NCBI GenBank assembly: GCA_000388065.2
Contig: KB932204.1
Reading direction: 5' to 3' (one strand)
From: Fonticula alba ATCC 38817
Lineage: Eukaryota > Protista > Nucleariida
DNA: 7,628 nucleotides
The stretch's first letter is position 1, and every line of letters starts with the position of its first letter. The notes under the pieces are model-generated. The model ran no database searches and was not told the origin of the DNA. It saw nothing but the letters and a program-made list of their open reading frames with translations. This document shows, one piece after another, positions 1,121-7,527 of the stretch. Position numbers and translations under genes: made by a program.

Positions 1121-1872
1121 NNNNNNNNNNNNNNNNNNNNNNNNNNNNNNNNNNNNNNNNNNNNNNNNNNNNNNNNNNNNNNNNNNNNNNNNNNNNNNNN
1201 NNNNNNNNNNNNNNNNNNNNNNNNNNNNNNNNNNNNNNNNNNNNNNNNNNNNNNNNNNNNNNNNNNNNNNNNNNNNNNNNNNNNNNNNNNNNNNNNNNNN
1301 NNNNNNNNNNNNNNNNNNNNNNNNNNNNNNNNNNNNNNNNNNNNNNNNNNNNNNNNNNNNNNNNNNNNNNNNNNNNNNNNNNNNNNNNNNNNNNNNNNNN
1401 NNNNNNNNNNNNNNNNNNNNNNNNNNNNNNNNNNNNNNNNNNNNNNNNNNNNNNNNNNNNNNNNNNNNNNNNNNNNNNNNNNNNNNNNNNNNNNNNNNNN
1501 NNNNNNNNNNNNNNNNNNNNNNNNNNNNNNNNNNNNNNNNNNNNNNNNNNNNNNNNNNNNNNNNNNNNNNNNNNNNNNNNNNNNNNNNNNNNNNNNNNNN
1601 NNNNNNNNNNNNNNNNNNNNNNNNNNNNNNNNNNNNNNNNNNNNNNNNNNNNNNNNNNNNNNNNNNNNNNNNNNNNNNNNNNNNNNNNNNNNNNNNNNNN
1701 NNNNNNNNNNNNNNNNNNNNNNNNNNNNNNNNNNNNNNNNNNNNNNNNNNNNNNNNNNNNNNNNNNNNNNNNNNNNNNNNNNNNNNNNNNNNNNNNNNNN
1801 NNNNNNNNNNNNNNNNNNNNNNNNNNNNNNNNNNNNNNNNNNNNNNNNNNNNNNNNNNNNNNNNNNNNNNNN
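1121..1872. other. Assembly gap (752 N)
   Basis: Run of N, followed by poly-C. It probably hides the 5' exon(s) of the LIM-RGS-PX gene. Confidence 0.98.
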
Positions 1873-1955
1873 CCCCCCCCCCCCCCCCCCCCCCCCGAGG
1901 TCTCCCCTCTTTCCCTCCGCGCCGCCCCCCCCCCCCCCCCCCCCGGTGCACGCAG

Positions 1956-4900
1956 TCTTCGGCAGCACCTCGCCCGAGGCGGCCACCGTCAATGACTTCA
2001 TCGCCCTGCGCCAGTGTGTCCTCGAGCGCCTGAAGAAGCTGGCTCTCGGAGCCAAGCGCATGATCGTCCTGGCCGACGACCTGATCGACGGCGGCTCGCA
2101 CGCGGTACGCGCGTCTCTCCTTCTCCCTCCTCCTCCTCCTCCTCTCTCTCTCTCCCTCTCGCCTGACCGTCCTCCTCCTCCCACCCTCGGCGGCACACAG
2201 CACGCCCTCGGCGACGGCCACGGCCCCGGCAGCCCGGCCCACGGCGGGTACTACAGCGACAGCGAGGAGGAGCTCGACGAGGATGACGAGATTTGCCACC
2301 TATGCTCGCTGCCCATCCGGCCGCAGGAGCCGCGAGTGCTGGTGGACGAGCCGGCCACCGGGCCGGCTACCGGCGCCTCGACCGACTCCATCGACGACGA
2401 CCCCCTTGCCAGCCCCCCCCTGGCGCCTCCCCATCAGCAGCCATCGCACTCATCCATGAGCCTGGCCGCCGGGGGCGTGTACATCCACATCCACTGCATG
2501 CGGTGCAATGTGTGCGCCGCGTCGCTGCTGGAGGCCCCCTTCTCGCTGGACCAGAATGAGCGCGTCCTCTGCGTCGGCTGTGCGTGCCCTTTTCGATTTT
2601 GCCCCCCTTGCGCAGGGGACGCCCCTTCCGGCGGGAGATCGCCGGGCCCGGCGCGAGGGGGTCTCCCCTTGCCTTGCCCCCTTTTGGGGCTGCCTCGCGC
2701 CTGGACATGCCAATCGCTGACCCAACCACCACCACCGCCGCCGCCGCCGCCGCCGCCGCCCGGCTCCTCGCGTGGCTCAATGCACGTCCGCAGGCTCGCC
2801 CAAGTGCCACCAGTGCCACCAGACCATCCTCCGGGACCTGGTGCAGGCCTTCGGCCGGACCTACCACGGGGATTGCTTCCAGTGCTACCAGTGCCACCAG
2901 CCGATGAAGTCCTCGCCGCAGTGCTCCTCCTCCGGGCTCGGCGGGTCCAACGGGACCCCCGGCTCGTCGCAGCATTTCTACCAGCAGTCCGGCCAGCCGA
3001 TTTGCTCGCGGTGCATGTCCAATCGGTCGGTCTTCATCAAGCGCGCCTTCCCCGAGGCGGACGAGCTCCTGCGTGCGTGGTCCTGCCCCCCCCCCCCCCC
3101 TCCCCCCGGCCGAGTGCCCTCCGGCTGGCTCTTCCCCCGGGGCTTCTTTTTTTTTTTTCCCCTCCCCTTCCTCTCGCGCCCTTGCTCGCGCTTCCCCCCT
3201 CGTGCACATCCTCACACGCGGCCACGCACACATGGCCCCCCTCGGCGGCGACCATACCGACAGACACCACGCCCCCGACGCCGACCGATGCCGATCCCAG
3301 CATGGACGAGGCCCCGCTGACGCCGACCACCGCCGAGTCCGACCACTTCATTTCGCTGTCGGACTTCCAGCACGGGTCCGTGTCGAAGCTCCCCCGGTCG
3401 GACTCCACCCTGTCGGTGATGACCCCGCGGCCGTCGTCAACCATGGTCTTCAATCTGGCCAACTCCCGGACGCTGGAGGGGTACGCGCCGCCTCTGCCTC
3501 CCTTCCCCTTCCGAAGTCTCCCTTTGCTTGCCTCCTTCTCTGGCCCTCCTCCATCGAGCATGCACATGTACTGACGCGCGGAGCCGGCGACATCGCCCTC
3601 CCTGCCACCCCCGCCCGCCGGGGTCCCGTGCTTGTGTGTGTGTGTGTGTGTGTGCGTCTGTGTGTGTCCCCGCAGTGTTCTCAACTCCGAGCAGGGGACC
3701 GACTACTTTGTCCGCTTCTGTATCGAGGATTACTCGGTGGAGAAGATCTTCTTCGTGCTGGACCTCCGCCAGTTTGAGACCGTGCAAAGTGCGTTCCTGA
3801 TGTCGCCCCCTCGTCGTCGGCCATGCTCCCTCTCGGGCCCTCGGCCAGACATACTCACCGCTGTGGGTGCCCCTTCCTTTGTCCTCCCCCCCCCCCCCCC
3901 CCCTTGCCATGACATGCAGTCGCATCTGCGTCGGACCTGCACCTGTACGCGACGACCATCTTCCACAAGTATCTCCGGCCGGATGCCGAGCTGGCGGTCG
4001 ACGTGCCGCTGGACCTGCGGATGGACCTGTTCAAGGTGATCGAGTCCAACCGGGTGAGCCGGTCGATGTTCCAGCGCGCGCGGGCCCTGGTGTACCAGCA
4101 GCTGGAGGACGAGGTCTTCCCGAAGTTCTTCTACAGCATTCTCGGCCGCCGGTACCTGGAGAGCATTGAGTTTGATGACAACGGCGAGGTGTCTCTGCGT
4201 GCGTGTGACCTCTCGTTCTTCTTCCTCTTCTTCCTTTTTTCTCTCCCCCTTCTCCGTCGCTGCCGCTGCCGCTGCCGCTGCCGCTGTGGTGGCGCGCGCC
4301 CGGCGAGGCGCGGGGCTCGCACATCTCGCACAGACAACTGACCGGGGGACCACTTGCGCAATCGGCTCGACGCGTAGTTTCCCTTGCCCAGCGCCGGAAG
4401 CCGGCCTTCTCGGACATCGAGGCCGCCGTGTCGATGGCCAACCTGTCGGCCTCCAACCAGGCCTCCGGCATCCCGAACACGGTGGTCATCGTCGGGGCCA
4501 GCGTCCGGACATTCGAGCGCCGGCGCGACCCGGACAAGTACTATGTACGTGTTGCTATGCATGGCCGGCCGGCCGGCCATCCTGTCGGCGCGCCTCGTGC
4601 TCTGCTGACGTGTGTCTCCCCCTCCCCTCCTGTGTCCTGCCCGCCGCTGTGTGTGTGTGTCTCTCTCTCTCTTTCGGGTTTCCTCTTGCTCTTTCCTTTT
4701 GCACGCACGCGCGCACAGGCGTACGAGGTCGTGGTCCACCGGGCTGTCTGCCGGCAGCGGCCCGCCCCCGTCGACGCCAACTCGTCTCAGGACCAGGCGA
4801 TCGCCATCACGACCATTGGCGTGTACCGCCGGTTCAGGTACGGCCTCCCCCTTTGTCTGCCCCGGCTGGCGTGTGCCTCCCATGCCGGTGTCTCCCCCCT

Positions 4901-5303
4901 GCTCTTCTTCCTCTTTCTCATCCCCCCCCCCCCCCCCCGTGGTGTATCTGATCCCGACGCCGCTGACCGTGCCCATGACACTGGCCACGCCCTGCCCCCG
5001 CCGCCGGCCAAATGCAGCCAATTCTTCCAGCTCCACCAGGCCCTCACCAAGCAGTTCCCCCGGCTGGTGTTCCCGCCCTTCCCGCCACGCATGAAGTTCG
5101 GCCGGAGCCAGGTCCAGCGCGTGACCGTCCAGAGGCTGGCCCACCTGGATGTGTACATGAAGGGACTGATGCAGCTGGCCGAGGTGAAGACCTCGGCCCG
5201 GCTGTTGGAGTTCCTCCACCCATCGGACGACGACATTCAGAACTACCGCTTCAACAAGCGCCTCAGTGCCATCTCCGTGGACTTCACCCTCAAGTACCAC
5301 TGA
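1956..5303 (+). CDS. Multi-exon gene, 5' incomplete, encoding a LIM-LIM-RGS(RH)-PX signalling/scaffold protein
   Basis: Exons 1956-2104, 2201-2579, 2794-3072, 3264-3480, 3676-3788, 3920-4198, 4378-4544, 4719-4837 and 5018-5303 (stop TGA 5301-5303). All eight introns are GT..AG, with donors GTACGC/GTGCGT/GTACGT/GTACGG and matching phases (0,1,1,2,1,1,0,2). Exons total 1988 nt = 2 nt + 662 codons. Splicing rebuilds domain motifs across junctions: LIM1 last Cys T|GC, RGS TLEG|VLNS, PX RRF-AG|C(Ser)-QF. The first visible exon starts in phase 1 after CGCAG, so upstream exon(s) probably lie in the gap. Confidence 0.9.
2126..2153 (+). repeat. Intronic (CCT)6/(CT)6 microsatellite
   Basis: Read directly in intron 2105-2200. 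Confidence 0.85.
2294..2795 (+). other. LIM domain 1 (spans intron 2580-2793)
   Basis: CHLC-x60-HIHC-MRC-NVC-x18-CVGC has all eight LIM zinc ligands. The first loop is much longer than the canonical 16-23 aa. Confidence 0.8.
2725..2760 (+). repeat. Intronic (ACC)4(GCC)8 compound microsatellite
   Basis: Read directly, between the GCTGAC at 2716 and the acceptor at 2793. Confidence 0.9.
2805..3014 (+). other. LIM domain 2
   Basis: CHQC-x16-HGDC-FQC-YQC-x36-CSRC, including the typical LIM segment VQAFGRTYHxxCFxCxxC. Confidence 0.88.
3470..4161 (+). other. RGS / RGS-homology (RH) domain (spans introns 3481-3675 and 3789-3919)
   Basis: Spliced sequence TLEGVLNSEQGTDYFVRFCIEDYSVEKIFFVLDLRQF...ATTIFHKYLRPDAELAVDVPLDLRMDLFKVI...MFQRARALVYQQLEDEVFPKFFYS follows the RGS helix pattern L..lL....G...F..F...E.s.En..F / I...Y......vni / F..a...v...me....P.F..S. 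Confidence 0.88.
3633..3654 (+). repeat. Intronic (TG)11 microsatellite
   Basis: Read directly, near the 3' end of intron 3481-3675. Confidence 0.9.
4258..4286 (+). repeat. Intronic (CGCTGC) hexamer repeat, about 5 copies
   Basis: Read directly in intron 4199-4377. Confidence 0.85.
4479..5225 (+). other. PX (phox homology) domain (spans introns 4545-4718 and 4838-5017)
   Basis: Spliced sequence ...VRTFERRRDPDKYYAYEVVV...VYRRFSQFFQLHQALTKQFPRLVFPPFPPRMKFGRSQVQRVTVQRLAHLDVYMKGLMQL...LLEFLHP contains the RR(F/Y)SxF..LH..L motif, the PxxP loop, the R..L..Y...L helix and the terminal FL. Confidence 0.9.
4648..4672 (+). repeat. Intronic (TG)6/(CT)6 compound microsatellite
   Basis: Read directly in intron 4545-4718. 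Confidence 0.85.
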
Positions 5304-6275: not shown

Positions 6276-6288
6276 NNNNNNNNNNNNN
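6276..6288. other. Small assembly gap (13 N)
   Basis: Run of N immediately after a poly-C tract. Confidence 0.98.
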
Positions 6289-6330: not shown

Positions 6331-6895
6331 ATGTCCGCCGCGGCGTCGATGTTTGCCCCCCCGCCAGCGCCCCTGGTCGGCGGCGCCCCGCCCGGCGGCG
6401 GAGCTCTTCCCGGCCCCGGGGACCCGGCGGCCGCCACCGCCCCCTACACGGATGACTCGCCGGACCTGTCGGCCTCCGAGCGCAACATCGTCACGGCCAT
6501 CGCGGCACTGGCCCTGCCGGACACCCTCGGGCACCACCACACCCTGGACCCCGGGCAGCCGGTGGCCGGGCAGCTGGACGACCTGCCGCTGGTGTCGCGC
6601 CTGGTGACCCTGGCCAATGCGGTGCGCGGCCTCTGCCGCGACGCGCCGGTGCTCGTGGCGCAAGCCGGCTGTGGCGAGGAGGGTGCGTGTTCGCCGCCGG
6701 TCGCGGAAGTCCCACCTTCCGCCGGCTGTCACTGACCCCCTTGCGTATCTCTCTCTGTGTGTGTGTGTGTGTGGGTGTACGTGTGTGTCTGTTTCATTCC
6801 TGCCTGCCGGACGGCCCCAGAACTGGAGGTCCTCCACAACCGCGCGTCCACCCTGCTGGAAGTCCTCCGCGAGCTGGTCAACGATGTGCGCCGAT
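6331..6895 (+). CDS. First two exons of a hypothetical protein (Pro/Gly/Ala-rich N-terminus followed by a predicted helical region)
   Basis: The ATG at 6331 is preceded by an in-frame TAG at 6307. Exon 6331-6682 has coding-like C/G-ending codons. Intron 6683-6820 runs GTGCGT..CACTGAC..CCCCAG in phase 1. The next exon starts at 6821 (E-LEVLHNRASTLLEVLRELVND) and ends at donor 6886 (GTGCGC) or 6896 (GTACGT). No family recognised. Confidence 0.7.
6749..6773 (+). repeat. Intronic (CT)4/(TG)9 compound microsatellite
   Basis: Read directly in intron 6683-6820. Confidence 0.85.
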
Positions 6896-7082
6896 GTACG
6901 TTCCTCCTCGTCCGGTGGCCTGTGTTTCTGTGCATGCAAGCTCAAGCCGCGCCCCCCCCCCCCCGAGCCACCCCCACCCCCCCCCCTACACGCGACCGCC
7001 CCCCCTCCCGCCCCCCGCGCCACCCCCACCCTACCCCCACCCCCCCCAGCCCCCCCACGCCCAACCACCCCACCCCGCCACC

Positions 7083-7527
7083 ATGCCGCCCAAGCGCTCG
7101 ATGGACACCGATGGCTTCGAGAGCTCCCGCATCCGCCGTGTGAAGGTGCGTCGCCCCTCTTGCCTGCCGCCCGCCCTGCTGCTCACGAGGGTGGCTTGCG
7201 CCCACACGTCCCCCCCTCCCCCCCGCACTCACACGCCCACACATCCTCGCCCAGACCGACATGATCTCCAGCGACGAGGAGGACGGCATCGGTGACTACG
7301 AGGACGACTTTGGTGACGACTTCGAGGAGGAGATCATCGTCCGGCGCGAGAGCGCCTTCACCGACGACGATGATGACGATGATGATGGCGACGATGAGAT
7401 GATCGGCAACGACCGCCCGGATGGCACGATCGACATCACCAAGCGCCTCGGCATGTCGACCATCACCCTGAAGGACGACGAGGATGACGACGACGAGGAC
7501 CACGAGAGCAACAAGATCAAGACCGAG
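7083..7527 (+). CDS. Acidic low-complexity protein segment, 3' incomplete; either a separate gene starting at 7083 or the continuation of the 6331 gene
   Basis: GCCACCATG context at 7077-7085. Exon 7083-7145 encodes MPPKRSMDTDGFESSRIRRVK. Phase-0 intron 7146-7254 runs GTGCGT..CTCAC..CCCAG. Exon 7255-7527 encodes TDMISSDEEDG...DDDDDDDD...HESNKIKTE (about 40 of 91 residues Asp/Glu). The next donor GTGCCT is at 7528, with GCTGAC near 7600. Confidence 0.75.

Follow-up and report, generated by a model that had tools for sequence, protein, structure and literature searches.

Single polypeptides with an RGS domain and, after it, a PX domain are known from the SNX-RGS group (SNX13, SNX14, SNX25 and yeast Mdm1), in which the pair is combined with membrane anchors, PXA and PXC. 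Adjacent LIM domains with full sets of zinc ligands are found in adaptors of the paxillin, PINCH and FHL type, the R4 RGS proteins (RGS1, 2, 3, 4, 8, 16 and 18) are small single-domain GTPase-activating proteins (GAPs), and PI3K-C2alpha combines a PX domain with kinase and C2 domains. H696_02712, a gene of the protist Fonticula alba ATCC 38817, bears a likeness to each of these systems. It lies in a stretch of 7,628 nucleotides (nt) of contig KB932204.1 (G000:C4:825777-833404, hereafter the window), within a 31.3-Mb genome of 214 contigs with a guanine plus cytosine (GC) content of about 68% and short spliceosomal introns. The order RGS then PX is shared with the SNX-RGS proteins; however, the Fonticula protein lacks membrane anchors, PXA and PXC and has instead a pair of LIM domains and, at the N-terminus, a helical bundle. 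Both the SNX-RGS proteins and the Fonticula protein would be expected to link G-protein or endolysosomal signalling with phosphoinositide membranes (PMC7956473, PMC4539980). With some reserve, we favour the reading that H696_02712 is a single nine-exon gene, 5'-truncated, which belongs to a small, unnamed, conserved family and encodes a soluble, lipid-docked scaffold, and that its RGS-PX pair arose by independent shuffling.

The nine exons, all on the plus strand, join in frame at all eight junctions with GT..AG introns, as read from the raw sequence and its three-frame translation. The introns span 96-214 nt, and each of the eight has a GTRCG donor, a YAG acceptor and a CT[GC]AC motif. They are pyrimidine-rich, with purine fractions of 0.19-0.39 compared with 0.43-0.49 in the exons. 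Pfam was run exon by exon with a LIM cut-off of 22.9 bits, while the public protein, P0001, was used for whole-protein analyses. Exon 1 (1956..2104; acceptor cag at 1953-1955, donor GTACGC) is 5'-incomplete and encodes the last helix of the N-terminal bundle. Exon 2 (2201..2579) encodes an acidic linker and the first LIM domain (LIM1), which taken alone scored 19.9 bits over profile positions 15-50, under the cut-off; exon 3 (2794..3072) encodes the second (LIM2) at 37.1 bits. Exon 4 (3264..3480) has no Pfam match and consists of a disordered Pro/Ser/Thr-rich linker that closes with a conserved R-T-L-x-G lead-in to the RGS domain. The latter is divided between exon 5 (3676..3788), which holds helices 1-3 with the conserved motif V-E-K-I-F-F and is placed by the Pfam RGS span of P0001 and by alignments, and exon 6 (3920..4198), which holds helices 4-9 (Pfam RGS 30.0 bits, profile 46-112). 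A linker and the first PX strand, with conserved F-E-[KR]-R ... K-Y-Y, make up exon 7 (4378..4544), according to alignments A1 and A4 and a predicted strand at residues 473-486. PX strands 2-3 and an inserted loop, with Y-R-R-F at the end, make up exon 8 (4719..4837), which is placed by alignments and has an intron position in common with the metagenome contig L017. Exon 9 (5018..5303) encodes the PX helices, the sequence P-P-F-P-P-R and a C-terminal helix ending in K-Y-H, followed by the stop codon TGA at 5301-5303 (Pfam PX 45.5 bits, profile 17-83).

All eight junctions are reproduced in the public protein H696_02712 (P0001; 627 amino acids (aa); annotated as "hypothetical protein" or "PX domain-containing protein"). 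This was the sole protein returned when the stop-free frame-2 open reading frame (ORF) at 1874-3571 was used as query with scoring restricted to exon 2, and its database record already lists RGS, PX and LIM as precomputed domains. The spliced gene model is thus already public and not new. In the joined protein LIM, LIM, RGS and PX each exceed their own Pfam cut-off (LIM x2 39.6 bits; RGS at 305-418, 45.8 bits; PX at 528-601, 57.0 bits). The AlphaFold2 (AF2) model gives predicted local distance difference test (pLDDT) values of 85-95 for LIM, 93-97 for RGS and 60-96 for PX. Five of the eight junctions sit within conserved blocks that align to two relatives, the intronless P0007 and the transcript-derived P0029, either gap-free or, once, with a single-residue gap. 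The other three (E1/E2, E3/E4 and E6/E7) fall in unconserved linkers, which counts against the model at those points. From the sequence, an in-frame alternative splice may be possible for intron 3 (donor 3077, acceptor 3300). An additional in-frame intron in the LIM1 insert (2336-2437) was considered and rejected: its donor, GTGCTG, is unlike the GTRCG of the eight others, its composition is coding-like and the public model keeps it as exon.

The sequence-only reading of this window had joined the nine exons into one LIM-LIM-RGS-PX polypeptide, had taken that architecture to be hidden by splicing, and had named a Pfam run and an AlphaFold prediction on the spliced protein as checks. The polypeptide is confirmed by the splice signals and by the identical public protein, Pfam finds the two LIM domains, RGS and PX, and the LIM, RGS and PX folds are confidently predicted. 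Hidden it is not, since the spliced product with all three Pfam domains was already public. The stated coordinates were right; the model has no true start, being 5'-truncated by an assembly gap, and a fourth module was overlooked.

When the RGS exon was searched with phmmer against 1.84 billion representative proteins (E <= 1e-3), just 29 matches were obtained. Both full-length close relatives among them have the LIMx2-RGS-PX order. P0007 (709 aa) is encoded by an uninterrupted ORF on metagenome contig L016 (2348 bp, 40% GC), and P0029 (755 aa) comes from the transcriptome of the aphelid Paraphelidium tribonemae (PMC6299283), as a EukProt record with a Trinity transcript name. The short matches are exon-sized fragments on eukaryotic metagenome contigs. 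In L017-19 (57.5% GC), L020-22 (about 26%) and L029 (48%), LIM, RGS and called PX ORFs follow one another on one strand within about 2.5 kb. In L023 (44% GC) a LIM ORF is followed by an RGS ORF on one strand with no called PX ORF, and the PX was found by tblastn. By the same method L017-19, L020-22 and L023 are colinear with the whole protein including PX, and all have the shared tail; L029 is placed in the family solely by the order of its LIM, RGS and PX ORFs. Identity across the full length of the family is 30-33% (alignment A1). L017 shares two intron positions with Fonticula, at exon 3/LIM2 and at exon 8/PX, and between 1750 and 3160 it has donors GTACGT, GTGCGT and GTGCGC and a CTGAC motif, so that the GTRCGY and CTGAC signals are common to both. 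The source of L017-19 is probably an uncultured Fonticula-like organism. The contigs themselves, L017 as well as L018 and L019, derive from three metagenomes, one of them of a bioreactor.

In all, at least seven sequence lineages with GC contents of 26-68% carry the LIM-LIM-RGS-PX order, including that of Paraphelidium. Weighing against a broad reading of this spread, taxonomic identity is known for two members only, Fonticula and Paraphelidium. A scan of metagenomes with a degenerate pattern gave, among the matches listed, only the L020 contig again (as L024), and the ESM Atlas yielded no feature match and only structural rows with template modelling (TM) scores of 0.17-0.26. No paper naming or describing a LIM-LIM-RGS-PX family was found, and the database names are limited to "hypothetical protein" and "PX domain-containing protein"; the earlier statement that no named family combines the three domains therefore stands. 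Its companion, that the protein is lineage-specific, does not, given the same order in the lineages above. In a 2010 survey LIM figures a single time among the domains associated with PX and receives no comment (PMC2837644), and RGS architectures are known to diversify and shuffle readily (PMC3971589). The next-nearest RGS relatives (P0005, P0006, P0008 and P0011-P0022) are proteins of 224-891 aa with 2-5 tandem RGS domains and no other Pfam domain.

The 5' end of the gene is obscured by a run of 752 undetermined bases (N) at 1121..1872, read directly from the sequence and bordered by long C homopolymers; the sequence immediately upstream of the window is also N. Exon 1 opens at an acceptor shortly after this gap, and the annotated ATG (2060-2062) lies inside a conserved helix of that exon. 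In a single pairwise comparison, residues 9-37 of exon 1 match residues 108-136 of P0007 with 48% identity (E=1e-5), and 27 of the exon 1 residues that match P0007 precede the annotated Met. The homologues carry 107-140 residues N-terminal to the segment aligned with exon 1, and these align with one another as helices. No other match to the upstream N-terminal region of P0007 was present anywhere in the Fonticula genome. Given the homology upstream of the annotated Met and the extra N-terminal residues of the homologues, the annotated start of H696_02712 is, on sequence comparison, a gap artefact, the public model is N-terminally truncated, and the family has a fourth module. Concealed in the gap at 1121-1872 are probably the first exon or exons, with the start codon, and some 110-140 residues of an N-terminal helical bundle. 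Further N runs bordered by long C/G homopolymers, as at 1121-1872, occupy 6276-6288 of the window and G000:C4:822204-825776 (L002 6405-9977) upstream of it, and non-coding sequence all through the window often contains C/G homopolymers of 12-25 nt.

The N-terminal region of P0007 is predicted to form a four-helix bundle of amphipathic helices (AF2 pLDDT 76). The structures that rank first against it are the vinculin tail, p130Cas, CCM3, alpha-catenin, talin and the FAT domain of FAK/Pyk2. Speaking against an assignment to any of these, the matches are weak: Foldseek E-values are 0.1-0.7, VIA Z-scores reach no higher than 12.8, a range that the tool regards as non-specific for helical bundles, and similar values are obtained with designed ones. 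Because the scores lie in that range, a FAT, vinculin or talin identity of the modelled bundle is a lead only. With this module included, the order of the family is a four-helix bundle, LIM, LIM, a disordered linker, an R4-like RGS, a second linker, a PI3K-C2alpha-like PX and a conserved C-terminal helix.

All zinc ligands of LIM1 are in place (C47, C50, H111, C114, C117, C120, C139 and C142). The domain is atypical in Fonticula in that about 60 residues separate C50 from H111, where 16-23 are usual, while the homologues are canonically spaced. A disordered loop of about 44 residues splits the first LIM1 zinc knuckle from the remainder, with AF2 pLDDT below 50 for P0001 57-100 and above 90 for 101-143; the first knuckle itself reaches only 62-71. 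LIM2 is canonical, its eight zinc ligands being invariant in alignment A1, and has an 18-residue low-complexity insert in finger 2. The linker encoded by exon 4 (P0001 233-296) has pLDDT below 50. In comparison with the PDB the closest solved LIM domains are those of paxillin, FHL1, PINCH1, TRIP6 and abLIM. Unlike the paxillin, PINCH and FHL adaptors, the Fonticula protein has only two LIM domains, a large and disordered insert in LIM1, and a fusion to RGS and PX. Neither LD motifs nor PDZ or further adaptor modules were detected in it.

The RGS domain (P0001 305-418, profile 2-112) is the best-conserved part of the family, exon 5 being the most conserved block, and adopts the nine-helix fold. 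A Foldseek search with the AF2 model found RGS1, 2, 16, 3, 8 and 4 at TM 0.84-0.88, with root-mean-square deviations of 1.5-2.3 A, and the family profile against PDB sequences placed RGS18, 2, 1, 3, 16 and 4 as the top RGS matches at 42-55 bits; the exon 5 peptide alone gave no match against the PDB. R4 proteins thus resemble the domain in fold and, of the solved RGS domains, match its sequence best. However, R4 proteins are small and single-domain, while the Fonticula RGS sits in a four-module protein of at least 660 aa with Asp in place of the key Asn. That position aligns with the catalytically important Asn of the R4 proteins ("evNld" in RGS18, "qiNid" in RGS1), which corresponds to RGS4 Asn128 in the helix 5-6 loop that contacts the G-alpha switch regions.

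Two features of the domain speak against a working GAP. At the Asn128-equivalent, Fonticula and L017 have Asp, P0007 and L020 have Asn, L023 has His and Paraphelidium has Val. Beside the conserved Glu of the helix 3-4 loop (the Asn88-equivalent), all members carry Lys rather than Asn, as seen in the pattern alignment. Other contact positions are kept or conservatively replaced: Ser, Glu and, in helices 7-8, Asp/Glu and Arg/Lys. From these residues, G-alpha binding by the domain is plausible; with Asp replacing the key Asn, variation at that site across the family and Lys for the Asn of the helix 3-4 loop, efficient GAP catalysis by the Fonticula RGS is doubtful. A stronger form of this doubt would have the RGS serve as a non-catalytic scaffold, as in axin or the GRKs, leaving the protein merely a PX-anchored LIM adaptor that does not switch G-alpha off. 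The substitutions just described fit such a role, and some RGS domains without GAP activity do serve as scaffolds (PMC3971589). The fold, however, is very near that of GAP-active R4 domains, the other G-alpha contacts are largely intact, two members retain the Asn, and no part of the family is better conserved. We regard this alternative as a real possibility, albeit an unlikely one. An adaptor role, proposed in the sequence-only reading together with a link to G-alpha signalling, stays plausible as an inference; the link is unproven, with the Asn128-equivalent being Asp and variable.

For the PX domain the family profile ranked the PX of PI3K-C2alpha first among PDB sequences at 83.6 bits, compared with 36 bits for the SNX14 PX, and Foldseek placed the AF2 model at TM 0.83 and 29% identity to the former, which is the closest solved PX relative. 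The Fonticula protein differs from PI3K-C2alpha in having no kinase or C2 domain and in the residues of the lipid site. The PI3K-C2alpha PX prefers PI(4,5)P2, and the presence of Thr1462, at the position of p40phox Arg58, and of Asp1464 has been linked to this preference and to lost 3-phosphate recognition (PMC2292188). Fonticula has Arg and Ser at these two positions, as in PX domains of the 3-phosphoinositide type, and its R-R-F aligns with R-T-F of PI3K-C2alpha; the family has R-R-[YF], except for R-T-F in Paraphelidium. The loop reads P-P-F-P-P-R in Fonticula and has Lys in the other members (P-x-x-P-x-[KR]), and the Arg before L-x-x-Y in helix 2 is conserved. In PX domains generally, the Pro-x-x-Pro-x-Lys loop and the helix-2 Arg have roles in lipid binding. 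Since Arg and Ser occupy the Thr1462 and Asp1464 positions and the loop and helix-2 Arg are kept, binding of 3-phosphoinositides is expected, with PI(4,5)P2 as an alternative. In favour of the alternative are the preference of the nearest solved PX for PI(4,5)P2 over PI3P and the PI3K-C2alpha-like R-T-F of Paraphelidium.

The stop codon follows 24 residues past the PX core, after a conserved tail, N-K-R-L-S ... K-Y-H. The same C-terminus is found in P0007, L017, L020, L023 and Fonticula (five ends read), and Paraphelidium stops at about the same point. Between 5304 and 6330 of the window there is no PXC-like sequence and no Pfam match.

The SNX-RGS proteins had been offered as the comparison for the RGS-PX pair, with the remark that their PXA/PXC frame and membrane anchors are missing here. 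The remark holds. No Pfam match to PXA or Nexin_C was obtained in P0001, P0007 or P0029, and for a transmembrane anchor the best 19-residue Kyte-Doolittle windows of the three reached 1.11-1.33, the usual threshold being 1.6, with the Fonticula N-terminus itself lying in the gap. As a guide to origin the comparison is misleading, since the PX is of the PI3K-C2alpha type and the RGS of the R4 type. In this genome PXA matches lie on contigs C3 and C1 and the only Nexin_C on C1, none of them at this locus. A separate PXA..PX..Nexin_C gene lies at C1:3445851-3451597 on the minus strand, and it may be SNX19/Mdm1-like because no RGS domain scored above the cut-off in that interval. Among the best 60 matches of the family profile against the PDB there is no SNX RGS. 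Of the 29 nearest RGS relatives, 20 were checked with Pfam and none has PXA or Nexin_C; those outside the family consist of tandem RGS domains and lack PXA and PX. The PI3K-C2alpha-type PX, the R4-type RGS, the absence of PXA, PXC and anchors, and the separate C1 gene lead us to read the RGS-PX pair here as best explained by a shuffle independent of the SNX13/14/25-Mdm1 lineage.

The opposing view is that the protein is a remodelled member of that lineage which lost PXA, PXC and anchors and gained LIM domains. The common order of RGS and PX would fit, the first structural row of the ESM Atlas is an SNX13 cluster (although at TM 0.26), and the gap conceals the Fonticula N-terminus. Set against these are the domain affinities and the 20 relatives just described, the N-termini of P0007 and P0029, which form a helical bundle rather than a transmembrane segment and PXA, the ends of the members about 24 residues past the PX core, and the fact that Fonticula owns its PXA..PX..Nexin_C gene elsewhere. 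We consider such remodelling improbable.

An annotation chimera, in which an adjacent LIM gene and an RGS-PX gene were misjoined via exon 4, might be read from the E3/E4 and E4/E5 junctions bordering the unconserved disordered linker, from the stop at 3318-3320 that retention of intron 3 would give and from the in-frame ATG at 3302 in exon 4, but it is very unlikely, because P0007 runs through LIM-RGS-PX as one unbroken 709-aa ORF, the Paraphelidium protein derives from a single assembled transcript, in four further contig groups the modules are likewise ordered over some 2.5 kb, conserved blocks span five of the junctions, introns are common with L017, introns 3 and 4 are bounded by signals equal in quality to the others, and the public annotation joins the exons identically.

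For the single-gene, independently shuffled protein that we prefer, a mechanism can be proposed. The protein would be soluble and without a membrane anchor. Its PX would dock it on PI3P-type membranes (endosomes, phagosomes or macropinosomes) through the kept basic and aromatic residues, and its RGS would bind activated G-alpha at these membranes, in Fonticula perhaps without acting as an efficient GAP. Recruitment of cytoskeletal or adhesion-type partners would fall to the LIM pair and the bundle at the N-terminus. Taken together, the residues and module order suggest a soluble scaffold at phosphoinositide membranes that unites a G-alpha-binding module with the interaction surfaces of LIM domains and bundle.

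The four-module order has been kept from a fungal-side cellular slime mould to an aphelid parasite, in genomes of 26-68% GC. Conservation across such different genomes points to a selected function that ties membrane lipids, G-protein signalling and LIM-type scaffolds to one another. If the preferred reading is right, the RGS-PX pairing arose at least twice, and the protein is a testable candidate for the means by which the amoeboid relatives of fungi link chemosensing with adhesion, phagocytosis or aggregation. The novelty is the conserved domain order, which is apparently undescribed; the three domain types RGS, PX and LIM are all familiar, and no new principle is involved. So far the family is known from Fonticula and an aphelid, and among the fungal and animal proteins that the search covered there is apparently no member. 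A bolder proposal is that it represents an ancient module of amoeboid or phagotrophic Holomycota, in which a vinculin/FAT-like bundle and paxillin-like LIM domains were joined directly to a regulator of G-alpha and an anchor for phosphoinositides, and that it was lost when fungi gave up phagotrophy. This we hold to be a long shot. If true, it would provide a direct and previously unrecognised link of adhesion or phagocytic-cup machinery to heterotrimeric G-protein signalling.

Two further genes lie downstream on the plus strand. The second gene of the window starts at ATG 6331; its exon at 6331-6683 is followed by a GTGCGT donor near 6684, another exon lies at about 6821-6896, and the gene has no Pfam match. 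The third starts at ATG 7083, with exons at 7083-7145 and 7255-7527, the second of which is extremely Asp/Glu-rich; it likewise has no Pfam match and runs off the window. Within H696_02712 itself, (TG)n and (TC)n microsatellites occur in introns 4 and 7 (for example at 3632-3668 and 4648-4672), and a GCC/GCT triplet repeat is located in intron 2 (2738-2760) and in intron 6 (4258-4285).

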